A stretch of DNA of 64,000 nucleotides, taken from positions 496,001 through 560,000 of the forward strand of contig CATNEN010000024.1 of the NCBI GenBank assembly GCA_950097015.1, written 5' to 3'. Below the pieces are notes generated by a model, which was not told the DNA's origin, did not search any database, and saw nothing but the letters and a program-made list of their open reading frames with translations. Numbering within the stretch: the stretch's first letter is position 1; each line of letters begins with the position of its first letter. This document shows, in pieces, positions 777 to 26,680 of this stretch. The DNA comes from Macrostomum hystrix (lineage: Eukaryota > Animalia > Platyhelminthes). Both the position numbers and the translations under genes were made by a program.

Positions 777-894
777 CAGTCTCCCTCTCGGAACCTGAAC
801 TGGGGCGAGGTCTTAAATATGACAATAGGTTCCCATATATATGACTTTAGACATTATAAAATGGAGTGCACAAAATGGCATAAAAAATTGCAAG

Positions 895-967
895 CGACCA
901 CGCCAGGACTCGAACCTGGAATCTTCTGATCCGTAGTCAGACGCGTTATCCATTGCGCCACGCGGCC
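895..967 (-). tRNA. tRNA-Arg-ACG: tRNA-Arg(ACG) copy 1
   Basis: 73-nt GGCCGCGTGGCGCAATGGATAACGCGTCTGACTACGGATCAGAAGATTCCAGGTTCGAGTCCTGGCGTGGTCG; cloverleaf, anticodon loop CT-ACG-GA, A/B boxes, T6 run downstream. Confidence 0.97.
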
Positions 968-1581
968 CTGACATGCCAGATCTAAATTCCTGCCGATATA
1001 CTGAGACTCCAGCGCTGACACTGTTTGATCTGCTGCGAGCTGCGGTAAAATGTGTAAGCACAATGGACTTTGGAATCGAATCCGCTTACTAGTCAGTACT
1101 CTTGTACTCAGTAGTCATGGCAAATTTCGAGCATCCAATATTACCATTTGACAATCCGATCTTCAAAAGTATATATAGTTTTGAAAAATCATATTTTTTG
1201 TCATTGGCAAGTTAGGTCTTCAGGGCACGAATACGAGAGCCAATTGTGCGACACACTATGATCTCTTACAGAGCTCATCGGAGTTGTTTTACTGACAACA
1301 AAAGCAGGATCAGATGTGCTAATCGGTCTATCTTTTGAGAATCTGTTGAGAACTAGCAATAATGAATCAATGAAGCCCAGTAGCACAAAACAGTACACTG
1401 TAGTAACTTTTAGAGGCCGTCTATGAAAATCAGTTGTGAAAAACATTTGCCTGTTTTGGATTAAAATAGATTTTTGAAAATTGGAATTGAAAAAGGAGAC
1501 ACCGAAAGTGTGCCAGCAGATCAAACTGTGCCAGCGCTGGAGTCTCAGAATATCGGCAGGAATTTAGATCTGGGATGTCAG

Positions 1582-1654
1582 GGCCGCGTGGCGCAATGGA
1601 TAACGCGTCTGACTACGGATCAGAAGATTCCAGGTTCGAGTCCTGGCGTGGTCG
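1582..1654 (+). tRNA. tRNA-Arg-ACG: tRNA-Arg(ACG) copy 2
   Basis: Identical 73-nt body; T4 downstream. Confidence 0.97.
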
Positions 1655-1996
1655 ATCAGTCTTTTGCATCAGAAGGTTTAGTTGCAGGAAATGCTTGAAT
1701 GTCCACTAGTTGATAGCTTGAGGGTGCATAAGTAGATGGCTTTAATGTCTATCAATAAGTAGCATGAGTGTTCATCAGTTGATACCTGATACGAGTTCGT
1801 AGTTCGGATATTGGTGATTTTGAAGACAGCGCAAGTTGCTCTATATTTTGAACCTTTGATTACGGGCTTCTCTGAATCAGTAAAAACGACATTCCGAAAC
1901 AAAACATATACTCGCAAATCTGGCGCGACAATTGTTAAAGAAGAAGGGTCCCCACCGCCAATGAATTCTTCACTCTACTTAAAAAAAGAATTCGAA

Positions 1997-2069
1997 CGAC
2001 CACGCCAGGACTCGAACCTGGAATCTTCTGATCCGTAGTCAGACGCGTTATCCATTGCGCCACGCGGCC
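1997..2069 (-). tRNA. tRNA-Arg-ACG: tRNA-Arg(ACG) copy 3
   Basis: Identical body; T7 downstream. Confidence 0.97.
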
Positions 2070-2716
2070 CTGACATGCCAGGTCTAAATTCTTGCTAATA
2101 TGCTGAGAGACTCCATGAGCGCTTAAATGAGGAACTGTTTGATCTGCTGCGAGCTGTGAGGACAATGGACTGAGTGTTACATTAGACATGAATCTGACGT
2201 ATTGCTCGAGAAGGGATATGGCAACACATTTTGGGACGTAAAATTCATGATGCAGACTGTTCTCAAGCATGGGAACACACGCTCACTGGCATATAATGGC
2301 TTCAGGTAAAAAAGTCTGAGGTCACAATTTGAGCTGTGTACTACGTGAGACATGAATATGATGGGCACTGCAACGACTGCAAGATCACTGCAAGCAGGAG
2401 AGTCCACAAGTTCAGCTGCGAAGCTGATCAAAGAGGAAACATTAACCCAGCTTTAGTATTGAGACGCTCACGGCTTTTACACCAATCAAAATGATATGAT
2501 TCTGCAGATGGATTATGTGTGTTCTGACTTAAGACACATCCTGATGGATGATGTGTCTTTCCCTTTTGTGCTGCTTTATCCTTTCTCAAACAGGTTTATG
2601 TCTCGATAAACAAAAGCTCATTGTGCTCACAGGTTTCATTGCAGCTCGCAGCAGATCAAACAGTGTCAGCGCTGGAGTCTCAGTATATCGGCACGAATTT
2701 TGATCTGGCATGTCAG

Positions 2717-2789
2717 GGCCGCGTGGCGCATTGGATAACGCGTCTGACTACGGATCAGAAGATTCCAGGTTCGAGTCCTGGCGTGGTCG
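2717..2789 (+). tRNA. tRNA-Arg-ACG: tRNA-Arg(ACG) copy 4 (A15T variant in D-loop/A box)
   Basis: GCGCATTGG instead of GCGCAATGG; otherwise identical. Confidence 0.9.
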
Positions 2790-3197
2790 CTTGAATTTTT
2801 TGTTTTTCAGCTGTTCATGCTGGAAGCTGTGCTCTTTGAGCTTTACGAATTGGCGTTTAGCGAGACGACTCATGTGGAGACCGTTTTTCACCTCTCGTGC
2901 CCACTGTTTAAAAGGTTAATTGTTGACTGTCTGAGTGGCATATGCTGATCGAGGGTCTCGATGTCAAGCTGGTTTGAAGACACGGTGATGAGGCGATCGT
3001 TGCAGTCATCGCCAGTTGATTAATCTCTGTCGATCAATGCTTTCGATCAGCAGCGTGCGTCGCAGAGGTCTTCTCTCGCTGTCGGTGCTGAATAATGATC
3101 AAAAACAACACGTGTCTTAATAAATCAACTAATAATTCCTTCCAGTGCTTGGAATGATAAAAAAGAATAGATGTTGTGTACAAAAACATAATCTGAG

Positions 3198-3270
3198 CGA
3201 CCACGCCAGGACTCGAACCTGGAATCTTCTGATCCGTAGTCAGACGCGTTATCCATTGCGCCACGCGGCC
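3198..3270 (-). tRNA. tRNA-Arg-ACG: tRNA-Arg(ACG) copy 5
   Basis: Identical body. Confidence 0.97.
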
Positions 3271-3802
3271 CTCTTCTTGCAAGCCGACGTTTCGTTGCCT
3301 CATTTCGATCAAGAATTGGGATATTTGCTCAACTGTCTTTTTTGGCCTCTGACAGTTTCTAGCTCGTATAGTACTTATAGCAGTGACTGCGCTGAAGTAC
3401 AAAAAATATAGGTGTGAGAGACTGTTGTGCGTTTCTGAACTTGCGATGAAGCGACAGTTTGGGCTCTAAAGTAACACACCAGAATTATTTTGCGAACTGT
3501 CAAAACTTGGAAAGATTTAAACAAATAAGCCAAAATACGTCATAACAACCTAGAAAATTTAAGGTCTCAACATTTGAGTCCGTAGCAAAGTTAAGCAAGA
3601 ATGTAACAATATTCCAAATTATCTGCAGTTGAATATTTTAATCAGCCTTTATCGTAGGCAAGAATGAGTCCTGCAGTTTTTATGTCACATAAAAGGTCAA
3701 ACCGGCGTCAAATGGTGACATAGGATGCATGAAATATTTAATGCAGTACTGACTAGTAAGTGGATTCAATTCCACAGTCCATTGTGCTCACATATTTCAC
3801 CG

Positions 3803-3849
3803 CAGCTCGCAGCAGATCAAACAGTGTCAGCGCTGGAGTCTCAGTATAT
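3803..3849 (+). promoter_or_regulatory. Conserved upstream element of class-A tRNA copies: CAGCTCGCAGCAGATCAAACAG (-75..-54) plus TATAT (-33..-29)
   Basis: The motif recurs upstream of copies 1,3,4,6,8,13,15,16 and partly 2; a regulatory role is inferred. Confidence 0.45.
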
Positions 3850-3877
3850 CGGCAGGAATTTAGATCTGGGATGTCAG

Positions 3878-3950
3878 GGCCGCGTGGCGCAATGGATAAC
3901 GCGTCTGACTACGGATCAGAAGATTCCAGGTTCGAGTCCTGGCGTGGTCG
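3878..3950 (+). tRNA. tRNA-Arg-ACG: tRNA-Arg(ACG) copy 6
   Basis: Identical body. Confidence 0.97.
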
Positions 3951-4397
3951 CTAGAAATTTTATTTTGTTTTAATTGACTCGAAATTTCCAATACTTCTCA
4001 GAAATTTTCATTTGATGCTTTAGTAATAATATAATAGCTATTTATGCTAAGGTAGAAGGTTAAGCTTGAGGTGTAATATTTGTATCTTACAAGCCAATCG
4101 ATCCACCTTGAAGCATGCGCATTCGAGCAAGGAAAATCCTGAAGCTCCATCATTGCCATCATTGTCAGGATGCGACTGCAAAGCTTGAGGCAATCGTGAG
4201 CTGACTGGCATTGAGCTGTAACTTAATGGCTGGTATAATTACCGATCTCAACGGTGCTTTGATTTAGCGACTTTACTGGAAACGTTATTCCGAAATAAAT
4301 TATGAGTACATACTGGCACATTTGGCTCAAGAATGGTTATAAAAAAGGTTCCACAAAAATAAATTATATTTCTTTTTCTCAGCTAAAAAAAGTCGAG

Positions 4398-4470
4398 CAA
4401 CCACGCCAGGACTCGAACCTGGAATCTTCTGATCCGTTGTCAGACGCGTTATCCATTGCGCCACCTGGCC
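4398..4470 (-). pseudogene. Degenerate tRNA-Arg(ACG) copy 7
   Basis: U33->A (loop CA-ACG-GA); acceptor stem GGCCAGG/CGTGGTT with a G6:G67 mismatch and C72T. Confidence 0.85.
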
Positions 4471-4987
4471 CTCTTCTGGCAAGCAGACCGAGCCTCGTTT
4501 GGATCAGGGACGGGAACATTGACTCAACTGTCTTTTACTTGGCCTCTAAAAGTCACTAATGTACTAATAGCAGTGGGAAAAAGTCGAAAAGTTGAGGTGT
4601 GAGAGACTGTCGTGAGTAGGGAACTGCCATGAGCCCAAACAATGAGGGCAGTGAAGTACAGAGCCTGAATTGTTGGGCAACCGAGAAAATTTGACTGTTT
4701 GTAACAAGCACTCCAACATTACCAAAAGATGTTAGAACATCTCTCAAGTTTTCATTCAGTTGTTCAGAAAAGCAGCAAATATTACAGTTATTACAGTTTA
4801 CTATCAAGAGAAAATAATTTTTATCCGTTTTCTTCTTGTCGTCAGCTAGATCGAGTTCAGCAGGTTTGAGTGTCATATAACAAGTAGTAAATCGTGCTCA
4901 CGTATTTCAGCCCAGCTCGCAGCAGATCAAACAGTGTCAGCGCTGGAGTCTCATTATATCGGCAGGAATTTAGATCTGGCATGTCAG

Positions 4988-5060
4988 GGCCGCGTGGCGC
5001 AATGGATAACGCGTCTGACTACGGATCAGAAGATTCCAGGTTCGAGTCCTGGCGTGGTCG
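4988..5060 (+). tRNA. tRNA-Arg-ACG: tRNA-Arg(ACG) copy 8
   Basis: Identical body. Confidence 0.97.
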
Positions 5061-5228
5061 ATCAGTCTTTTGCATCAGAAAGTTTAGTTCTGGAAATGCT
5101 TGAGTGTTGAAATGCTTAGTTGATATTGTACTGAGTCGCTAGTTACTAGGATTAGCATCTTGCTCCCACTCCTTGACTAGTTAGCCATCGCTGCTGTATG
5201 GTCTAACTTAATCTGTATCTCAAGGGAA

Positions 5229-5695
5229 GAGTATCCTTCAGTATATCGAGAACAACAGGACAGCTCTTGGATAAGAGTATCCTTCAGTATATCGAGAACA
5301 ACAGGACAGCTCTTGGATAAGAGTATCCTTCAGTATATCGAGAACAACAGGACAACTCTTGGATAAGAGTATCCTTCAGTATATCGAGAACAACAGGACA
5401 GCTCTTGGATAAGAGTATCCTTCAGTATATCGAGAACAACAGGACAGCTCTTGGATAAGAGTATCCTTCAGTATATCGAGAACAACAGGACAGCTCTTGG
5501 ATAAGAGTATCCTTCAGTATATCGAGAACAACAGGACAGCTCTTGGGTAAGAGTATCCTTCAGTATATCGAGAACAACAGGACAGCTCTTGGGTAAGAGT
5601 ATCCTTCAGTATATCGAGAACAACAGGACAGCTCTTGGGTAAGAGTATCCTTCAGTATATCGAGAACAACAGGACAGCTCTTGGGTAAGAGTATC
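5229..5695. repeat. 46-bp minisatellite x~10 (GAGTATCCTTCAGTATATCGAGAACAACAGGACAGCTCTTGGATAA)
   Basis: Period 46 (5229, 5275, ...); no spacers. Confidence 0.95.
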
Positions 5696-6290
5696 TAGAT
5701 ATTTAGGAGCATAGGACAGCTCTTGGATAAGGGCATTGGGAACAAGGACAACTCGTGGATATGAGTATCCTTCAGTAAAGTCGCATATAGGGACTTCTCT
5801 TTACATCCCCAGGTTCAGGATCTCTCTTGGATAAGAGGATAACTCTGCCATCAGTCTTAGCAGCTGTAGACCACTATAGGACAAGAGTGTCTCAACGATC
5901 CCCAGGTTCAGGATCTCTCTTGGATAAGGGAACACTTCCTTCATAGTCAACTTTCGTCGGTGTGGAAAACTGTTCACAGACAATGGTCTCCGAGTCTCGA
6001 GTTTCAGATATTACTTATTTTTCCAATAATAGGTCTAAGGCGAGAGAAGTCATAAGAGAGAGAGTAGGGTCATTCGACCCTACTCACTATGGCGACAGCA
6101 ACCCTACCATTTTCAGGAGTTTATCAGTTTATTTCAGGAGTTTTTTAAAGGTATTTTTAAGGAGCTTGTCTTCAAATTAAAGTAATATTCACCTCTCACT
6201 CCAAATTTTGAACCTCAAACTTACATCCGCCCTTAAATCTGGTTTTCGCTTACCAATGAGTTTTATTAACTAAGCGGAGATACCACAATA

Positions 6291-9200
6291 GATAGACTGT
6301 CCATCAGTTGATAGCTTGAGTGTCCATCAGTTAATAGCTTGAGTGTCCATCAGTTGATAGCTAGACTGTCCATCAGTTAATAGCTTGAGTGTCCATCAGT
6401 TGATAGCTTGAGTGTCCATCAGTTAATAGCTTGAGTGTCCATCAGTTAATAGCTTGAGTGTCCATCAGTTGATAGCTTGAGTGTCCATCAGTTGATAGCT
6501 TGAGTGTCCATCAGTTAATAGCTTGAGTGTCCATCAGTTAATAGCTTGAGTGTCCATCAGTTGTTAGCTTGAGTGTCCATCAGTTGATAGCTAGACTGTC
6601 CATCAGTTAATAGCTTGAGTGTCCATCAGTTGATAGCTTGAGTGTCCATCAGTTGATAGCTTGAGTGTCCATCAGTTGATAGCTTGAGTGTCCATCAGTT
6701 GATAGCTAGACTGTCCATCAGTTGATAGCTTGAGTGTCCATCAGTTGATAGCTTGAGTGTCCATCAGTTGATAGCTTGAGTGTCCATCAGTTGATAGCTT
6801 GAGTGTCCATCAGTTGATAGCTTGAGTGTCCATCAGTTGATAGCTTGAGTGTCCATCAGTTAATAGCTTGAGTGTCCATCAGTTGATAGCTAGACTGTCC
6901 ATCAGTTAATAGCTTGAGTGTCCATCAGTTGATAGCTTGAGTGTCCATCAGTTAATAGCTTGAGTGTCCATCAGTTGATAGCTTTAGTGTCCATCAGTTG
7001 ATAGCTTGAGTGTCCATCAGTTGATAGCTTGAGTGTCCATCAGTTGATGCTTGAGTGTCCATCAGTTGATAGCTTGAGTGTCCATCAGTTGATAGCTTGA
7101 GTGTCCATCAGTTGATGCTTGAGTGTCCATCAGTTGATAGCTAGACTGTCCATCAGTTGATGCTTGAGTGTCCATCAGTTGATAGCTTGAGTGTCCATCA
7201 GTTGATAGCTTGAGTGTCCATCAGTTGATAGCTTGAGTGTCCATCAGTTGATAGCTTGAGTGTCCATCAGTTGATAGCTTGAGTGTCCATCAGTTGATAG
7301 CTTGACTGTCCATCAGTTGATAGCTAGACTGTCCATCAGTTGATGCTTGAGTGTCCATCAGTTGATAGCTAGACTGTCCATCAGTTGATGCTTGAGTGTC
7401 CATCAGTTGATAGCTTGAGTGTCCATCAGTTGATAGCTTGAGTGTCCATCAGTTGATAGCTTGAGTGTCCATCAGTTGATAGCTTGAGTGTCCATCAGTT
7501 GATAGCTTGAGTGTCCATCAGTTGATAGCTTGAGTGTCCATCAGTTGATAGCTTGAGTGTCCATCAGTTGATGCTTGAGTCTCCATCAGTTGATAGCTTG
7601 AGTGTCCATCAGTTGATAGCTTGAGTGTCCATCAGTTGATGCTTGAGTGTCCATCAGTTGATGCTTGAGTGTCCATCAGTTGATAGCTTGAGTGTCCATC
7701 AGTTGATGCTTGAGTGTCCATCAGTTGATGCTTGAGTGTCCATCAGTTGATAGCTTGAGTGTCCATCAGTTGATAGCTTGAGTGTCCATCAGTTGATGCT
7801 TGAGTGTCCATCAGTTGATAGCTTGAGTGTCCATCAGTTGATGCTTGAGTGTCCATCAGTTGATAGCTAGACTGTCCATCAGTTGATAGCTTGAGTGTCC
7901 ATCAGTTGATAGCTTGAGTGTCCATCAGTTGATGCTTGAGTGTCCATCAGTTGATAGCTAGACTGTCCATCAGTTGATAGCTTGAGTGTCCATCAGTTGA
8001 TAGCTTGAGTGTCCATCAGTTGATAGCTTGAGTGTCCATCAGTTGATAGCTTGAGTGTCCATCAGTTGATAGCTTGAGTGTCCATCAGTTAATAGCTTGA
8101 GTGTCCATCAGTTGATAGCTTGAGTGTCCATCAGTTGATAGCTTGAGTGTCCATCAGTTGATAGCTTGAGTGTCCATCAGTTGATAGCTTGAGTGTCCAT
8201 CAGTTGATAGCTAGACTGTCCATCAGTTAATAGCTTGAGTGTCCATCAGTTGATAGCTTGAGTGTCCATCAGTTGATAGCTTGAGTGTCCATCAGTTGAT
8301 AGCTTTAGTGTCCATCAGTTGATAGCTAGACTGTCCATCAGTTAATAGCTTGAGTGTCCATCAGTTGATAGCTTGAGTGTCCATCAGTTGATAGCTTGAG
8401 TGTCCATCAGTTGATAGCTTTAGTGTCCATCAGTTGATAGCTAGACTGTCCATCAGTTAATAGCTTGAGTGTCCATCAGTTGATAGCTTTAGTGTCCATC
8501 AGTTGATAGCTAGACTGTCCATCAGTTGATAGCTTGAGTGTCCATCAGTTGATGCTTGAGTGTCCATCAGTTGATGCTTTAGTGTCCATCAGTTGATAGC
8601 TTTAGTGTCCATCAGTTGATAGCTAGACTGTCCATCAGTTAATAGCTTGAGTGTCCATCAGTTGATAGCTTGAGTGTCCATCAGTTGATAGCTTGAGTGT
8701 CCATCAGTTGATAGCTTGAGTGTCCATCAGTTGATAGCTTGAGTGTCCATCAGTTGATAGCTTGAGTGTCCATCAGTTGATAGCTAGACTGTCCATCAGT
8801 TAATAGCTTGAGTGTCCATCAGTTGATGCTTGAGTGTCCATCAGTTGATAGCTAGACTGTCCATCAGTTGATAGCTTGAGTGTCCATCAGTTGATGCTTG
8901 AGTGTCCATCAGTTGATGCTTTAGTGTCCATCAGTTGATAGCTTTAGTGTCCATCAGTTGATAGCTAGACTGTCCATCAGTTAATAGCTTGAGTGTCCAT
9001 CAGTTGATGCTTGAGTGTCCATCAGTTGATGGCTTGAGTGTCCATCAGTTGATAGCTTGAGTGTCCATCAGTTGATAGCTTGAGTGTCCATCAGTTGATA
9101 GCTTGAGTGTCCATCAGTTGATAGCTAGACTGTCCATCAGTTAATAGCTTGAGTGTCCATCAGTTGATGCTTGAGTGTCCATCAGTTGATAGCTAGACTG

Positions 9201-9765
9201 TCCATCAGTTGATAGCTTGAGTGTCCATCAGTTGATGCTTGAGTGTCCATCAGTTGATAGCTTGAGTGTCCATCAGTTGATGCTTGAGTGTCCATCAGTT
9301 GATAGCTTGACTGTCCATCAGTTGATAGCTTGAGTGTCCATCAGTTGATAGCTTGAGTGTCCATCAGTTGATGCTTGAGTGTCCATCAGTTGATGCTTGA
9401 TTGTCCATCAGTTGATGCTTGAGTGTCCATCAGTTGATAGCTTGAGTGTCCATCAGTTGATAGCTTGAGTGTCCATCAGTTGATAGCTTGAGTGTCCATC
9501 AGTTAATAGCTTGAGTGTCCATCAGTTAATAGCTTGAGTGTCCATCAGTTGATAGCTTGAGTGTCCATCAGTTGATAGCTTGAGTGTCCATCAGTTGATA
9601 GCTTGAGTGTCCATCAGTTAATAGCTTGAGTGTCCATCAGTTAATAGCTTGAGTGTCCATCAGTTGATAGCTTGAGTGTCCATCAGTTGATAGCTTGAGT
9701 GTCCATCAGTTGATAGCTTGAGTGTCCATCAGTTAATAGCTTGAGTGTCCATCAGTTGATAGCTT
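6291..9765 (+). repeat. 23-bp satellite (GTGTCCATCAGTTGATAGCTTGA), ~150 copies, with 22-bp and substitution variants
   Basis: Period 23; recurrent variants TTAATAGC, CTAGACTGTCC, GATGCTT, TTTAGTG. Confidence 0.98.
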
Positions 9766-9948
9766 ATAGTTTGGAAAACGGTGATTCTGAAGACAGTGCA
9801 TGCGAGTTGCACTATATGAAGAGCCTTTGATTAACGGCTCAACAAGTCACTGAAAATAATAAATATACTCGCACATCTGAAGCCAAAAGAAGGAGAGTTC
9901 ACATTGAAAATTAATTTTATTTTTCTCTATTATAAAAAGGAAATCCAA

Positions 9949-10021
9949 CGACCACGCCAGGACTCGAACCTGGAATCTTCTGATCCGTAGTCAGACGCGT
10001 TATCCATTGCGCCACGCGGCC
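9949..10021 (-). tRNA. tRNA-Arg-ACG: tRNA-Arg(ACG) copy 9
   Basis: Identical body; T5 downstream. Confidence 0.97.
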
Positions 10022-10605
10022 CTCCGCCTGCTCAATCTCTGCTTCTTACGTTTCAACTAATTTACTTTGATGTTTGGTCAGCAGGATTGAATTCCCTTTA
10101 AAACTACTGCCAGAAGCATGTAGCGCATCGAAACTAATTTGGTTCCATTTTATTTGAACCTTCAACTTTCAGGTTCCTCAATCCCTTAAGCTGAAGCCTC
10201 CTTAAAATCCTAATAACATGTTTGAGCTAATCAATCACCCAATGACAGGTAAGGACTGTCCCTAGGTAACACCTTTCATAATGTCATTCTGGTCATCAGC
10301 TTGCCCAGTGCGGGTTCGCCAGACAGTTTTAATTTCGCTCATTATTGAAGGCTCAATCAGCCCATGCTGCAGCCCTGCTCAGCTGAGGCGGTTCACAACA
10401 GAGCTGACCAACTACTTAGACCAGATTCTGCATTGATCTTTGAGAGCATTCTTTCGAATATATTCCGTTCTCAACTGCCTTCTATTTAATATATTTTCTC
10501 TCCTCACCTATTAAAGCAAAAAAAATTTTGGAGGCTGACTAAATCACAGTTCTGTGAATATCCAAGTCCCAGATAGAAAAGAAAGGACATGAAAGGTTCT
10601 TAGAG

Positions 10606-10678
10606 GGCCGCGTGGCGCAATGGATAACGCGTCTGACTACGGATCAGAAGATTCCAGGTTCGAGTCCTGGCGTGGTCG
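10606..10678 (+). tRNA. tRNA-Arg-ACG: tRNA-Arg(ACG) copy 10
   Basis: Identical body. Confidence 0.97.
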
Positions 10679-11031
10679 CTCGAGTTATATATTTTGTTGT
10701 TCATAAAGTATTTTTTTATCATTCCAGTCACTGAAAAGAATTATTAGTTGATTTGTTCAGACACGTGGTGTTTTTCTTCAATGGTTGATCAACAGCGATT
10801 AAGCAACTGGCGATGTATGCGACGATCGCCTCCGTAGCGTGTCTCAAATCAGCTTGACATCGAGACTCTCGACCAGCATGTCACAGTCAGACAGTCTAAA
10901 ATCAACCTATAAAACTATAGTAGGACAGATGAAAAATACGGTCAGCACACGAGTCGACTCGCTAAAATCCAATTTGTAACGCTCAGAGAGCACAGCTTCC
11001 AGAAACAACAGTTAAAGACAAAAAATGCAAG

Positions 11032-11104
11032 CGACCACGCCAGGACTCGAACCTGGAATCTTCTGATCCGTAGTCAGACGCGTTATCCATTGCGCCACGC
11101 GGCC
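11032..11104 (-). tRNA. tRNA-Arg-ACG: tRNA-Arg(ACG) copy 11
   Basis: Identical body. Confidence 0.97.
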
Positions 11105-11417
11105 CTCTTCTGGCAAGCCGATCGAGTCTCTTTTCAAACAGGAACAGGGATATTTGCTCAAATGTCTTTTATTTAGCCTCTAAATGTTACCATTGTAATC
11201 ATGACAGTGATTTTGCAATCATTTTAAATCAGTTGGCCTTGGCGTTTCTTTTTTGGGTCAAGAATCTGGAACCTGCATGGTTTATTTATTTGGTTAAACA
11301 GTGTTATTCTCTGTAACAATTGATGTCTTCGTTCTCAATCGGTCATGTTGGCAGCCATGCCGGGGTGTTTAATCGTGCAATATTAATATTAGAATAACAA
11401 GAGCTTCAATCATTTTC

Positions 11418-11875
11418 AATTGTCTTCGTCGACTTCAGGAAAGCTTTTGATTCTGTCAGCAGGTCCGTTATTGTGGCAGTTCTGGTTCAACACGGAGTCC
11501 CGCCGCTGATCATCAAGTCGGTGATGGACTTCTATAGCAGCTCGCACGTCTTCGTCAACACCAGTGATCGCCTAACTGAGGAATTCCAAATGACATGCGG
11601 AGTCCTCCAAGGCGACACGCTGCCTACCTTCCTATTTGTGGTTGCGGCTAACTTTGTGTTGCGACAGGCGATCAGCGAAGAGGACTGCTTCATCGTTGCA
11701 CGTAGGTGCAACTCTCGCTACCGGGAAGAGCGTCTCGGCTGCCTTGCGAAGGCTGTCGACATCGCGCTCCTTTGCCATGACCTCGAGGCGGCTCAGGGAG
11801 CCATTCATCGCCTGGCGCTGGAGAACGCTAAATATGGACTGAAGATCAACGCCACCAAGACCGCAACAAGACTTT
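11418..11875 (+). mobile_element. Decayed non-LTR retrotransposon reverse transcriptase fragment (RTE-like)
   Basis: IVFVDFRKAFDSV, GVLQGDTL, GLKINATKT motifs; catalytic YADD degraded to KAVD. Confidence 0.88.
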
Positions 11876-12188
11876 CTATGATGACCTGACGTCGATTGGC
11901 CTGACGCCTGTGACGCCTTGCCTTGACTCCATGGCCTACAAGCTGCGTGTGCTCGCTGCTTAAGCAGTGTTTGTTATCATTGTTAATAATAGTCATATTT
12001 TTATTATTATACCAACAATAGTGCAGCCGCACTTATCTCGGGAGAGTCTTCGATGAATTGAGCCCGAGTCGAAATTCGTGTTCGAGTCAACTAAATATAC
12101 TCGTATATGGGCACTTGTGTCGTGGAGTCGAGTGTATAGAGTGGAGTTTTTCAGCTGGAGATTCTCTAGTCTGAAAAGCAGCACAAAT

Positions 12189-12432
12189 AATATAGGTGAT
12201 TGGAACAGAGCATTGGTTTGAGTATGTTGTGGCTATTAATATAGGTGATTGGAACAGAGCATTGGTTTGAGTATGTTGTGGCTATTAATATAGGTGATTG
12301 GAACAGAGCATTGGTTTGAGTATGTTGTGGCTATTAATATAGGTGATTGGAACAGAGCATTGGTTTGAGTATGTTGTGGCTATTAATATAGGTGATTGGA
12401 ACAGAGCATTGGTTTGAGTATGTTGTGGCTAT
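12189..12432. repeat. 49-bp minisatellite x5
   Basis: AATATAGGTGATTGGAACAGAGCATTGGTTTGAGTATGTTGTGGCTATT in tandem. Confidence 0.95.
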
Positions 12433-12952
12433 TCTAGGGCTGCCCAGGTGCTGGATTTGAGAATCTAGATAAAACGAGAATCTCAATTTCTTGGACTTGG
12501 CTAAAGTAAAAAAGATGTGTAAGAGGTGTAAGAGACTGTCGTGAGTTTCTGAACTTGCGATGAACCACCAATTAAAGGCAATGAAGTACAGACCCAGAAT
12601 GATTAAGCAAACGGAAAAACATGACCGCTTGTAAACAAGCACTCCAACATACGCCATATATATAAAGCTAGAACATTTGACGTCTGAACATTTCAGTCCG
12701 TCTGAAGTTTTAAGGCATATGAGATTCTTTTAAATAATCTGCCTATAATTTTCTGACTCATTTCCTTCTTCTCTTCAGCTTGAACGACCAATGCTTTCGA
12801 TCAGCAGCGTGCGTCGCAGAGGTCTTCTATCGCTGTCGGTGCTGAAGAATGATGAAAAAAACCACGTGTCTTCTAAATCAACTAATAGTTCGTTCCATTG
12901 ACTGGAAGTGAGAAAAAGGAATATTTTATGAACAAAAAATATATGACTCGAG

Positions 12953-13025
12953 CGACCACGCCAGGACTCGAACCTGGAATCTTCTGATCCGTAGTCAGAC
13001 GCGTTATCCATTGCGCCACGCGGCC
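12953..13025 (-). tRNA. tRNA-Arg-ACG: tRNA-Arg(ACG) copy 12
   Basis: Identical body. Confidence 0.97.
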
Positions 13026-13246
13026 ATCTTCTGGCAAGCCGACGTTTCGTTGCCTCGTTTCGATCAAGAATTCGGATATTTGCTTAACTGTCTTTTTTAG
13101 CCTCTGAAAGTTTCTAGCTCGTGGTTTGATTTTTATTTTGATTTTGATTAAAGCTAGCACTACTCATAGCAGTGACTGCGCAGAATTACAAAACATATAG
13201 TTGTGATAGACTGTCGTGAGTTTCTGAACTTGCGCTGAAGCGACTG

Positions 13247-13261
13247 TTGCGCCACGTGGCC
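13247..13261 (-). pseudogene. 15-nt 5' remnant of a tRNA-Arg (GGCCACGTGGCGCAA) that keeps a copy-10-like upstream flank
   Basis: 13262-13510 is the reverse complement of the copy-10 upstream flank (~10350-10605); the tRNA body is deleted after nt 15. Confidence 0.75.
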
Positions 13262-13524
13262 CTCTGAGAACCTTTCATGTCCTTTCTTTTATATCTGGGA
13301 CTAGGATATTCACTCAACTGTCATTTAGTCAGCCTCCGAAACTTTCTATTGTTTGAATAGATAGCGAAAAGAAATCGACTAGCGAGGCATTTGAGAACGG
13401 AATATATTCAAAAGAATGCTCTCAAAGATCAATGCAGAATTTGCTCTAAGTAGTTGGAAAGCTCTGTTATGAACCACCTCAGCTGATCAGGGCTGCAGCA
13501 TGGGCTGAGACATAAAAAAAGCTA

Positions 13525-13985
13525 TGAAGATAGACTTTAAAGCTATGAACTGATAGACTTTAAAGCTATAAACTGATAGACTTTAAAGCTATGAACTGAT
13601 AGACTTTAAAGCTATGAACTGATAGACTTTAAAGCTATGAACTGATAGACTTTAAAGCTATGAACTGATAGACTTTAAAGCTATGAACTGATAGACTTTA
13701 AAGCTATAAACTGATAGACTTTAAAGCTATGAACTGATAGACTTTAAAGCTATGAACTGATAGACTTTAAAGCTATGAACTGATAGACTTTAAAGCTATG
13801 AACTGATAGACTTTAAAGCTATGAACTGATAGACTTTAAAGCTATCAACTGATGGACACTCAAGCTATGAACTGATGGTCACTCAAGCTATCAACTGATG
13901 GTCACTCAAGCTATCAACAGATGGTCGCTCAAGCTATGAACTGATGGTCACTCAAGCTATCAACAGATGGTCGCTCAAGCTATCG
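13525..13985 (-). repeat. 23-bp satellite in opposite orientation; variant CTTTAAAGCTATGAACTGATAGA grading into the reverse complement of the 6.3-9.8 kb monomer
   Basis: TCAAGCTATCAACTGATGGACAC-like units at 13845-13980. Confidence 0.93.
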
Positions 13986-14149
13986 TCAGATCGACATTCA
14001 AGCAGCGATGCGCGATATTAAAAAATACACCTAAGCTTAACCTTCTACCTTAGCATAAATAGCTATTATATTATTACTAAAGCATCAAATGAAAATTTCT
14101 GAGAAGTATTGGAAATTCCGAGTCAATTAAAACAAAACGAAATTGCAAA

Positions 14150-14222
14150 CGACCACGCCAGGACTCGAACCTGGAATCTTCTGATCCGTAGTCAGACGCG
14201 TTATCCATTGCGCCACGCGGCC
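14150..14222 (-). tRNA. tRNA-Arg-ACG: tRNA-Arg(ACG) copy 13
   Basis: Identical body. Confidence 0.97.
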
Positions 14223-14827
14223 CTGACATCCCAGATCTAAATTCCTGCCGATATACTGAGACTCCAGCGCTGACACTGTTTGATCTGCTGCGAGCTGCGG
14301 TGAAATATGTGAGCACTATGGACTGTGGAATTGAATCCACTTACTAGTCATTACTCAATTACATATTTCGAGCATCCTATATCAATATTTGACGCCGGTT
14401 TGACCTTTTATGTGACACTAAAACTGCAGGACTCATTCTTGCCTACGATAAAGGCTGATTAAAACATTCAACTGCAGATAATTTGGAAGATTGTTACATT
14501 CTTGCTTAACTTTGCTACGGACTCAAATGTTGAGACCTTAAATTTTCTAGGTTGTTATGACGTATTTTTGCTTATTTATTTAAATCTTTCCAAGTTTTCC
14601 AGTTCGCAAAATAATTCAGGTGTGTTACTTTAGAGCCCAAACTGTCGCTTCATCGCAAGTTCAGAAACGCACAACAGTCTCTCACACCTATCTTTTTGTA
14701 CTTCAGCGCAGTCACTGCTATAAGTACTATACGAGCTAGAAACTTTCAGAGGCCAAAAAAGACAGTTGAGCAAACATCCCAATTCTTGATCGAAATGAGG
14801 CAACGAAACGTCGGCTTGCAAGAAGAG

Positions 14828-14900
14828 GGCCGCGTGGCGCAATGGATAACGCGTCTGACTACGGATCAGAAGATTCCAGGTTCGAGTCCTGGCGTGGTCG
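14828..14900 (+). tRNA. tRNA-Arg-ACG: tRNA-Arg(ACG) copy 14
   Basis: Identical body. Confidence 0.97.
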
Positions 14901-15308
14901 CTCAGATTATGTTTTTGTACACAAAATCTATTCTTTTTTATCATTCCAAGCACTGGAAGGAATTATTAGTTGATTTATTAAGACACGTGGTGTTTTTTAT
15001 CATTATTCAGCACCGACAGCGAGAGAAGACCTCTGCGACGCACGCTGCTGATCGAAAGCATTGATCGACAGAGATTAATCAACTGGCGATGACTGCAACG
15101 ATCGCCTCATCACCGTGTCTTCAAACCAGCTTGACATCGAGACCCTCGATCAGCATATGCCACTCAGACAGTCAACAATTCACCTTTTAAACAGTGGGCA
15201 CGAGAGGTGAAAAACGGTCTCCACATGAGTCGTCTCGCTAAACGCCAATTCGTAAAGCTCAAAGAGCACAGCTTCCAGCATGAACAGCTGAAAAACAAAA
15301 AATTCAAG

Positions 15309-15381
15309 CGACCACGCCAGGACTCGAACCTGGAATCTTCTGATCCGTAGTCAGACGCGTTATCCATTGCGCCACGCGGCC
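15309..15381 (-). tRNA. tRNA-Arg-ACG: tRNA-Arg(ACG) copy 15
   Basis: Identical body. Confidence 0.97.
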
Positions 15382-16035
15382 CTGACATCCCAGATCTAAA
15401 TTCGTGCCGATATACTGAGACTCCAGCGCTGACACTGTTTGATCTGCTGCGAGCTGCAATGAAACCTGTGAGCACAATGAGCTTTTGTTTATCGAGACAT
15501 AAACCTGCTGGAGAAAGGATAAAGCAGCACAGAAGGGAAAGACACATCATCCATCAGGATGTGTCTTAAGTCAGAACACATGCACATAATGCATCTGCAG
15601 AATCATATCATTTTGATTGGTGTAAAAGCCGACGTGAGCGTCTCAATACTAAAGCTGGGTTAATGTTTCCTCTTTGATCAGCTTCGCAGCTGAACTTGTG
15701 GACTCTCCTGCTTGCAGTGATCTTGCAGTCGTTGCAGTGCCCATCATATTTATGTCTCACGTAGTACACAGCTCTCATTGTGCCCTCAGACTTTTTTACC
15801 TGAAGCCATTATATGCCAGTGAGCGTGTGTTCCCATGCTTGAGAACAGTCTGCATCATGAATTTTACGTCCCAAAATGTGTTGCCATATCCCTTCTCGAG
15901 CAATACGTCAGATTCATGTCTAATGTAACACTCAGTCCATTGTCCTCACAGCTCGCAGCAGATCAAACAGTTCCTCATTTAAGCGCTCATGGAGTCTCTC
16001 AGCATATGAGCAAGAATTTAGACCTGGCATGTCAG

Positions 16036-16108
16036 GGCCGCGTGGCGCAATGGATAACGCGTCTGACTACGGATCAGAAGATTCCAGGTTCGAGTCCTGG
16101 CGTGGTCG
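16036..16108 (+). tRNA. tRNA-Arg-ACG: tRNA-Arg(ACG) copy 16
   Basis: Identical body. Confidence 0.97.
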
Positions 16109-25769: not shown

Positions 25770-26209
25770 GTGAGTAGCTATATTTGAAATCGCAAATCTC
25801 AATTAAACAAAAATTAACTTATAATCTAAGCCGTGTCTATCTCAACAAACACACTTTCCGATTCTTTCCAGTCGATTCACATGGACTCAGTAAGTTTACG
25901 ATTTGATTTGGTTAAAATAATCAATTTTTATTGCTCAATACATTAACTGCTTCGACAGTTTTTTTCGAGCGTGGGTTCTGTGTTTTTCTTGGCACGCTGG
26001 TGCGAATTCTGCCAATTTCTGTCTATTATAGTCTTGATAAACTACATGCACAAACATAGTTGTAGGCACAATTGAAGTGCCAAAAAAATCTTTTACATTG
26101 GATAGAGATTTCTGATGTTTTCAAATTAAACTGGGTGTTTAATTGATGTGGATGGGCAAAATGATATGTATTGCGGGCCAACAGGGAGTATAAGAAACGA
26201 TGTTGATTG

Positions 26210-26680
26210 ACACGGGAGAGATAAGTCACGGGAGAGATGAGACACGGGAGAGTTGAGACACGGGAGAGTTGAGACACGGGAGAGATGAGACACGGGAGAG
26301 TTGAGACACGGGAGAGATGAGACACGGGAGAGTTGAGACACGGGAGAGTTGAGGCACGGGAGAGATGAGACACGGGAGAGTTGAGACACGGGAGAGTTGA
26401 GACACGGGAGAGTTAAGGCACGGGAGAGTTGAGGCACGGGAGAGTTGAGGCACGGGAGAGTTGAGACACGGGAGAGTTAAGGCACGGGAGAGTTGAGGCA
26501 CGGGAGAGTTGAGGCACGGGAGAGTTGAGACACGGGAGAGTTGAGGCACGGGAGAGTTGAGGCACGGGAGAGTTGAGACACGGGAGAGTTGAGACACGGG
26601 AGAGATGAGGCACGGGAGAGATGAGGCACGGGAGAGTTCGGACAGTGGAGAGTTCGGACAGTGGAGAGTTTGGACAGTGG
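26210..26680. repeat. 16-bp minisatellite (CACGGGAGAGTTGAGA)
   Basis: Tandem; intronic. Confidence 0.95.

Follow-up and report, generated by a model that had tools for sequence, protein, structure and literature searches.

Probable local amplification of a 23-bp minisatellite in paralogous spacers of a tRNA-Arg(ACG) gene cluster of Macrostomum hystrix

General features of the locus

The stretch analyzed here (hereafter the window) comprises 64,000 nucleotides of the genome of the flatworm Macrostomum hystrix (contig CATNEN010000024.1; C24:496001-560000 of the assembly) and harbors a cluster of tRNA-Arg(ACG) genes, three spacers of which contain arrays of a 23-bp tandem repeat. Sixteen tRNA-Arg(ACG) genes were identified within 894-16108 by ARAGORN and Rfam, mostly in alternating orientation, and Rfam detected no other RNA genes in the cluster. 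The genome searched has 220,453,370 bases in 42 contigs and was assembled with canu from PacBio reads of a worm pool of the inbred line SR1, with haplotigs purged (PMC10468722).

Two pairs of converging genes are central to this study. Copy 2 (1582..1654, plus strand; Rfam RF00005, 58.8 bits) faces copy 3 (1997..2069, minus strand) across a spacer of 342 bp (1655-1996), and copy 8 (4988..5060, plus strand) faces copy 9 (9949..10021, minus strand) across a spacer of 4888 bp (5061-9948). ARAGORN called all four genes, with Rfam hits also for copies 8 and 9, and the numbering and coordinates of the tRNA genes in the original prediction, which had been made from the letters of the window, proved correct by both programs. 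Each of the seven 5'-to-5' spacers of the cluster measures 517-654 bp and lacks arrays. The 3'-side spacers are 342 to 4888 bp long, and the arrays, a dispersed element, and a reverse transcriptase fragment are all located on 3' sides. The 23-bp repeat is confined to three spacers; five spacers contain an array of any kind, one of these arrays being cargo of a transposable element (TE). The flanks of the eight remaining tRNA-Arg(ACG) genes of the genome are unrelated.

Homology of the short and long spacers

The spacers 1655-1996 and 5061-9948 had been predicted to be homologous at both ends, and their alignment supports true paralogy far beyond chance. On the left side, the 3' trailer of tRNA 2 (1655..1692, plus strand) and that of tRNA 8 (5061..5097, plus strand) are homologous, with 41 of 44 positions identical (approximately 93%), and this trailer motif occurs genome-wide only at these two genes. 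The 68 bp upstream of both genes are 93% identical, and the identity over the whole block (1514-1702 versus 4920-5107) is 95.2%. On the right side, the flank of the short spacer (1792..1996, plus strand; 3' side of tRNA 3) and that of the long spacer (9770..9948, plus strand; 3' side of tRNA 9) agree at approximately 79-80% of the aligned positions, with several indels, and contain all motifs quoted in the original prediction. The terminator of tRNA 9 appears in this flank as an A5 run at 9934 on the plus strand. In both spacers the array boundaries lie at matching positions of the flanks, as had been proposed.

A further stretch in spacer 6/7 (4279..4355, plus strand) is homologous to 1883-1954 of the short spacer right flank (score 40, reached by 0 of 300 shuffles). 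On the basis of this alignment, it may represent a much-decayed fourth paralogue without an array. Decayed 23-bp units in the center of spacer 6/7 were considered and rejected, the similarity to the unit not being significant (p = 0.07). Additionally, the trailers of tRNAs 2 and 8 share an 11-nt stretch (1668-1678 and 5074-5084) in which 10 of 11 positions are the same as in the anticodon-arm region of the tRNA (p = 0.026, compared with shuffles); it may be a trace of a partial tRNA duplication.

Composition of the three 23-bp arrays

The long array (6298..9769, plus strand) consists of 152 units of 12 variant types by tiling, and Tandem Repeats Finder (TRF) reported period 23, 151.9 copies, and 95% matches over 6298-9765, in agreement with the approximately 150 homogeneous units claimed before. 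The four commonest variants account for 73, 23, 22, and 19 units. Only 102 edits relative to the consensus were counted over the 152 units (mean edit distance 2.9%), compared with a divergence of approximately 20% between the paralogous flanks, and the array is homogeneous up to both edges. Its variants have a higher-order structure: runs of 9 and 7 units in the same variant order recur 15 units apart, and the autocorrelation of the variants has maxima at lags of 5, 10, and 15 units (p <= 0.001 to 0.025). This recurrence of multi-unit blocks indicates that the long array grew by duplicating blocks of several units, as out-of-register exchange predicts.

The 23-bp array is non-coding. No open reading frame of at least 50 aa was found within 6298-9769, 23 bp is not divisible by 3, and stop triplets occur in the unit on both strands. 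Homopolymer runs of at least 4 T or A are likewise absent from 6298-9769. Two possible explanations of the repeat were tried and rejected. An origin of the unit from the tRNA gave a local score of 10 (p = 0.93 against 1000 shuffles), and hairpin-driven slippage was not supported, the stability of five single-stranded units not exceeding that of shuffled sequences for either strand (z = +1.0 and +0.3). The exact 23-mer had no match in public metagenome contigs.

The short array (1693..1784, plus strand) contains four diverged head-to-tail units of 23 bp (S1-S4), followed by a degenerate tail to approximately 1791. These units differ from the long-array consensus at 3, 5, 7, and 2 of 23 positions, respectively, which amounts to 17 of 92 positions (18.5%), and the two arrays are 81-83% identical over 92-99 bp (E values of 1e-17 to 1e-19). 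The short spacer had been described as holding about four degenerate proto-units; the four units are real, with the phase 1700-1791 in that description, but they do not form an unexpanded single-copy seed. The single-copy progenitor expected for the de novo birth of a satellite is thus missing from the short spacer, which has four tandem units.

A third array (13518..14003, minus strand), overlooked in the original prediction, comprises 21 units of the same repeat and lies between tRNAs 12 and 13, both of which are on the same strand. Its first unit shares a state with S1 and is followed by six to seven consensus-like units, one of them identical to the long-array consensus, and then by 13 near-identical units of a variant that has five differences from the consensus and has three states in common with S3. 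No element adjoins the short or the third array. The DNA beyond the third array (13508-13247) is 86.8% identical to the region upstream of tRNA 10 (10357-10620), and tRNA 12 with its trailer is 90% identical to tRNA 10 with its trailer. The far side of the third array is thus colinear with the DNA beyond the long spacer, and the array is most plausibly an inverted, partly deleted paralogue of that spacer. Judged by these alignments, it is closer to the long spacer (approximately 13% divergence) than the short spacer is (approximately 20%).

The right arm of a palindrome (14020..16108, minus strand) lies next to the third array. Its arms of approximately 2.1 kb (1997-4081 versus 16108-14020) are 97.4% identical over 2092 bp, and the outer ends (1997 and 16108) fall exactly at tRNA 3' ends, tRNA 3 being the outer end of the left arm. 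The inner end at 14020 is 17 bp from the third array, and a short stretch like a unit junction occurs at approximately 4064-4077, just inside the end of the other arm. At approximately 13250-13270 on the minus strand, a truncated 5' end of a tRNA-Arg-like gene is preceded by a copy of the upstream region of tRNA 10. From its sequence, this is apparently left over from the rearrangement by which the third array came to lie between two tRNAs of the same strand.

With head-to-tail units in the range of 10-100 bp, discrete arrays, and distinct flanks, the 23-bp repeat is a minisatellite. The copy number differs among the paralogues (4, 21, and 152 units) as seen in a single assembly of an inbred line. 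A classical satellite, which extends over tens of kb or occupies many loci, is not an apt description: the largest array measures 3.47 kb, and the monomer (<=2 mismatches) is confined to the cluster.

A dispersed element in the long spacer

The left part of the long spacer is occupied by a dispersed, unclassified, non-autonomous element of approximately 1.16 kb (5129..6287, plus strand), recognized by repeated genome matches. Its left terminus (the first ~90 bases from 5129) matches at least 25 places on at least 12 contigs with 78-92% identity, many of these alignments beginning with the query's first base. For the right part (5948-6287), 10 places match with 68-80% identity (most 68-73%). 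Homology among the copies ends at approximately 6287, before the 23-bp array. Neither canonical Helitron ends nor terminal inverted repeats were seen in the element by inspection.

Within the element lies a 46-bp minisatellite (5227..5731, plus strand; 11.1 copies, 96% matches by TRF). One other copy of the element (L013) aligns over 5226-6287 and has its own array of 46-bp period (L013:2116-2733), and another (L016) shows matches to the 46-bp unit. Judging from these copies, the 46-bp array is cargo of the dispersed element, an ordinary internal minisatellite of a TE. The 46-bp array had been included in the predicted satellite origin; it is indeed present, but as TE cargo (at least 25 copies) it is not part of a local origin. 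Of the two repeats only the 46-bp array is a TE-derived satellite, the 23-mer being absent from the other element copies and from the rest of the genome.

The element is bordered on the left by the first 23-bp-type unit of the long spacer (5098..5125, plus strand), which has 28 nt owing to a 5-nt internal duplication and is split from the array by the element. On the right, a partial unit (6288..6297, plus strand) differs by inspection at approximately 2 of 11 bases from the tail of the fourth-commonest variant. With one unit on the left and a partial unit on the right, the element was evidently inserted inside the array near its left end.

Genomic distribution of the 23-mer and its 13-nt core

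A genome search for the 23-mer allowing <=2 mismatches returned 127 forward and 4 reverse copies, exactly the counts of the window itself. The 23-mer is therefore not the cargo of a young mobile element, and its abundance as a genome-wide mobile repeat, named in the original prediction as the result that would count against a local origin, was not observed.

A more permissive blast-type search identified two arrays of 70-76% identity, one with a 21-bp unit (C3:2785708-2786486) and one with a 20-bp unit (C38:16147846-16148400). The corresponding array loci are L048:2694-3527 (C3:2785694-2786527) and L049:2841-3410 (C38:16147841-16148410). Both arrays share with the 23-bp unit a 13-nt core, GTGTCCATCAGTT. 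Their single-copy flanks show no relationship to one another or to the tRNA spacers, and no tRNA genes were found within the two 6-kb loci. A pattern search, after removal of the window variants, gave the core in close or periodic matches at C3:4791232, C7:11922600, and C1:16270041, which look like further arrays from the spacing of the matches. Single core sites numbered approximately eight; chance would give approximately five, and the reversed controls gave two. By a rough estimate from the sampled array density, approximately one array of the genome is expected to share some 13-mer with the unit by chance; on this rough basis, the sharing of one core by five unlinked arrays looks real.

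For background, we sampled twenty 10-kb pieces of the genome (L028-L047; 200 kb) from contigs C1, C7, C11, C24, C29, and C38. Most of the sampled arrays (80 of 104) are private to their own locus. A dispersed family with a 16-bp unit accounts for 13 of the 104 arrays; it was found in the window (26209-26670) and in L030, L031, L033, L034, L037, L040, L042, and L043, at nine sampled places on four contigs, with 12-mers of the consensus unit in common. When the 23-bp unit was compared with other arrays, 11 of 107 tested reached p <= 0.05, four of which were related to the query by construction; the remaining ~7 of ~103 unrelated arrays, against ~5 expected, are too weak a signal to use.

By TRF, tandem repeats covered 34.7% of the window (31% within the cluster and 36% outside it) and 29.5% of the genome sample, where arrays of at least 400 bp occurred at approximately 13 per 64 kb. 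The total repeat content published for the assembly is 22.9% (PMC10468722). As approximately 30% of the sample is minisatellite, more than this total, minisatellites seem to be under-counted there.

Origin and amplification of the 23-bp repeat

Taken together, these results favor, with a probability of roughly 70%, the local amplification of a short, locus-specific, non-coding 23-bp minisatellite in one family of 3'-side spacers. According to this interpretation, the tRNA genes and the spacer family would have been copied by segmental and inverted duplication, with breakpoints in or beside the identical tRNA genes, and the common ancestor of the spacers would already have carried a short, heterogeneous tandem array of few units. 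The array would have stayed at four units and drifted in spacer 1655-1996, one unit type would have been amplified to 152 units in spacer 5061-9948, and a different unit type to 13 of 21 units in spacer 13026-14149. The arrays would have grown several units at a time, through out-of-register exchange or replication slippage. Separately, the 1.16-kb element with its own 46-bp minisatellite would have integrated into the second unit of the long spacer.

The original prediction held that the birth of a satellite could be read directly from an ancestral seed and its expanded state. That does not follow, as the short copy is already tandem and polarity cannot be read from the paralogues alone. Because the short spacer already has a four-unit array, its comparison with the long spacer shows a difference in amplification, not the first duplication; the duplication that created the repeat predates all three copies. 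The growth mechanism and the polarity are what we infer, and for the polarity we lean towards few units as the ancestral state.

The distribution of unit variants bears on this point. Three derived states occur both in S3 and in the amplified variant of the third array (p = 0.029 in a permutation over all unit pairs), and one of the three is also present in eight units of the long array. In addition, the short and third arrays have one state in common in their first units. These shared states suggest that the ancestral array may already have been heterogeneous and that different types were later amplified in different copies.

Several points weigh against this interpretation. The ancestral state of few units rests on paralogues without an outgroup, and the sharing of variants, with p of only ~0.03, might be due to gene conversion among the arrays. 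The 13-nt core is better preserved in the long array than in the short units; if the arrays on other contigs are true relatives, the short units have decayed. The greater loss of the core in the short units, together with their 18.5% divergence, which equals that of the flanks, argues that the short units are not a primitive state. Moreover, the array length comes from one PacBio/canu assembly of an inbred worm pool (PMC10468722), and the insertion of the element inside a unit is deduced from the partial units that border it, an exact target-site duplication being unassignable.

We regard a collapse as possible but less plausible than amplification. The ancestral array would then have been long and homogeneous; the copy in 1655-1996 would have been deleted to four units and then decayed, while the others kept or turned over their arrays. 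A divergence of the short units from the long-array consensus close to that of the flanks (approximately 20%) is what decay of once-identical units predicts, and the short units carry 1-4 changes in the core, by eye, which the long array retains. However, the three states that S3 has in common with the third-array variant, one of them also in the long array, are unexpected under independent decay. Each of the two largest blocks (152 and 13 units) is nearly homogeneous and has its own variant type, as would be expected from separate recent amplifications.

An import of the repeat into the ancestral spacer is unlikely. Here, a short array of a dispersed minisatellite family would have arrived via a mobile element, extrachromosomal circles, or ectopic conversion, and the locus would show the amplification stage only. 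The core shared with the C3 and C38 arrays and their identity of 70-76% to the 23-bp array are consistent with such an arrival, as are the three further array-like core loci, where approximately one chance array is expected. Dispersed minisatellite families do exist in this genome, as the 16-bp family shows, and an element with internal arrays sits in the long spacer itself. Against this, the single-copy, unrelated flanks of the C3 and C38 arrays reveal no vehicle, the different unit lengths (20, 21, and 23 bp) and the identity of ~70-75% mean that any common origin is old, and most sampled arrays are locus-private.

A related and still more speculative idea concerns the core itself. The 23-bp array could belong to a set of unlinked minisatellites with units of 20, 21, and 23 bp, distinct flanks, and a shared core, seeded or stabilised by a factor that recognizes this core. 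Candidates for such a factor could be a DNA-binding or recombination-initiating protein or the nicking enzyme of a mobile element; the competing explanation would be random slippage. If this were true, the tRNA-spacer paralogues would provide a natural series of 4, 21, and 152 units for the amplification of a core-bearing seed.

A special role of the convergent gap between Pol III genes, as implied in the original prediction, is not visible in these data, and we consider it very improbable that T4 read-through, convergent transcription, or fork pausing at tRNA genes destabilised the gap and led to expansion. tRNA genes are polar replication-fork barriers in yeast. The T4-only terminators reported for tRNAs 2 and 8 were confirmed, with T4 runs at 1662 and 5068: these two genes, which precede the short and long arrays, respectively, are the sole copies with a single T4 run in the first 40 downstream bases (three other copies also have only T4 runs, but two or three each). 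The cluster arrays of the window also lie on tRNA 3' sides and never in 5'-to-5' spacers. Yet tandem-repeat density in the cluster is not raised above that of the rest of the window or of the genome sample. The same T4 trailer precedes both the 4-unit and the 152-unit array, and terminator runs shield the long array, which is separated from tRNA 8 by the T5, T6, and T5 runs of the element (6018, 6141, and 6154) while a T5 run lies between it and tRNA 9. No array occurs in four other convergent spacers, the core-sharing C3 and C38 arrays have no tRNA within 6 kb, and the repeat strand lacks unusual structure. The contrast between array-free 5'-to-5' spacers and variable 3' gaps fits upstream constraint with freedom on the 3' side, not a transcription-driven process. 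Pol III transcription is not needed for the array, and the 3' gaps are unconstrained DNA in a minisatellite-rich genome.

Mis-assembly of repeats as the source of the array length or the paralogous layout is hardly credible: the assembly does come from PacBio reads of a worm pool put together by canu with haplotigs purged, and the 22-bp unit variant (22 units) could partly be a polishing error, but long reads can readily span a 3.5-kb array, which here has distinct flanks at either end and a structured variant map, and the three arrays differ in variant composition and flanks.

Comparison with known systems

Satellite DNA has been modeled as passing through birth, dissemination, and local amplification (Ruiz-Ruano et al. 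2016, PMC4935994). The likeness to that model is that short arrays spread and one is amplified locally, here across three sites with 4, 21, and 152 units. In M. hystrix, however, the spread occurred by segmental duplication within 13 kb and not genome-wide, the largest array (3.5 kb) is a minisatellite and not a cytologically clustered satellite, and the birth step is not visible. TEs with internal minisatellites and derived satellites include Tetris and DINE-1 of Drosophila and the pearl/Helentron-associated repeats of bivalves. These systems resemble the 46-bp array only, since the 23-bp array is not flanked by element termini.

Clustered tRNA genes with tandem repeats in their spacers are superficially similar to the tRNA arrays of Entamoeba, which, according to Tawari et al. 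(2008, PMC2652664), have intergenic tandem repeats of variable number and unclear function. Nearly all tRNA genes of Entamoeba are in uniform array units with complex short tandem repeats (STRs) in each spacer, and these arrays make up >10% of the genome. The cluster of M. hystrix, by comparison, has one isoacceptor, alternating orientation, mosaic spacers, longer units, and a 23-bp repeat in three spacers; it neither consists of uniform units nor carries STRs throughout. A tRNA array on chromosome 1 of Arabidopsis contains locally duplicated tRNA genes (PMC2886086). The present cluster likewise has many copies of one tRNA gene produced by local duplication. The Arabidopsis array is a regular tandem of triplet units, whereas the M. 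hystrix cluster is alternating, with a palindrome of 2.1-kb arms.

Unlinked arrays of 20-, 21-, and 23-bp units with a common 13-nt core also recall another kind of system. Jeffreys et al. reportedly described, in 1985, families of hypervariable minisatellites with a shared core. The M. hystrix set differs in comprising about six loci with rough statistics, and it is known here from sequence only.

The locus is a fresh example of an already known process, real and tidy but ordinary, and it opens no new question on Pol III genes. One repeat at 4, 21, and 152 units in paralogous spacers 5-12 kb apart, with a different variant in each large block, makes a worked example, and the array could be used as a marker with a variable number of tandem repeats (VNTR) for lines of Macrostomum hystrix. 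The wider context may outweigh the locus itself, as approximately 30% of the sampled sequence is minisatellite, mostly in private arrays and with few dispersed families. This abundance, together with the mix of private and dispersed arrays, makes the M. hystrix genome well suited to studies of the start and spread of minisatellites.

Other features of the cluster

Spacer 11/12 contains a reverse transcriptase fragment (11407-11886, plus strand; Pfam RVT_1, E = 5.4e-9) followed by stop codons, which is a dead retroelement piece. The same spacer also has a perfectly homogeneous array of five 49-bp units (12188-12433); it was rejected as an amplified piece of the 23-bp spacer family, the similarity not being significant (p = 0.2). 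tRNA copy 7 (4397-4470, minus strand) has several substitutions, one of them in the anticodon loop region, and scored 44.1 bits, whereas the other copies reached 58.8; this copy is probably decaying.

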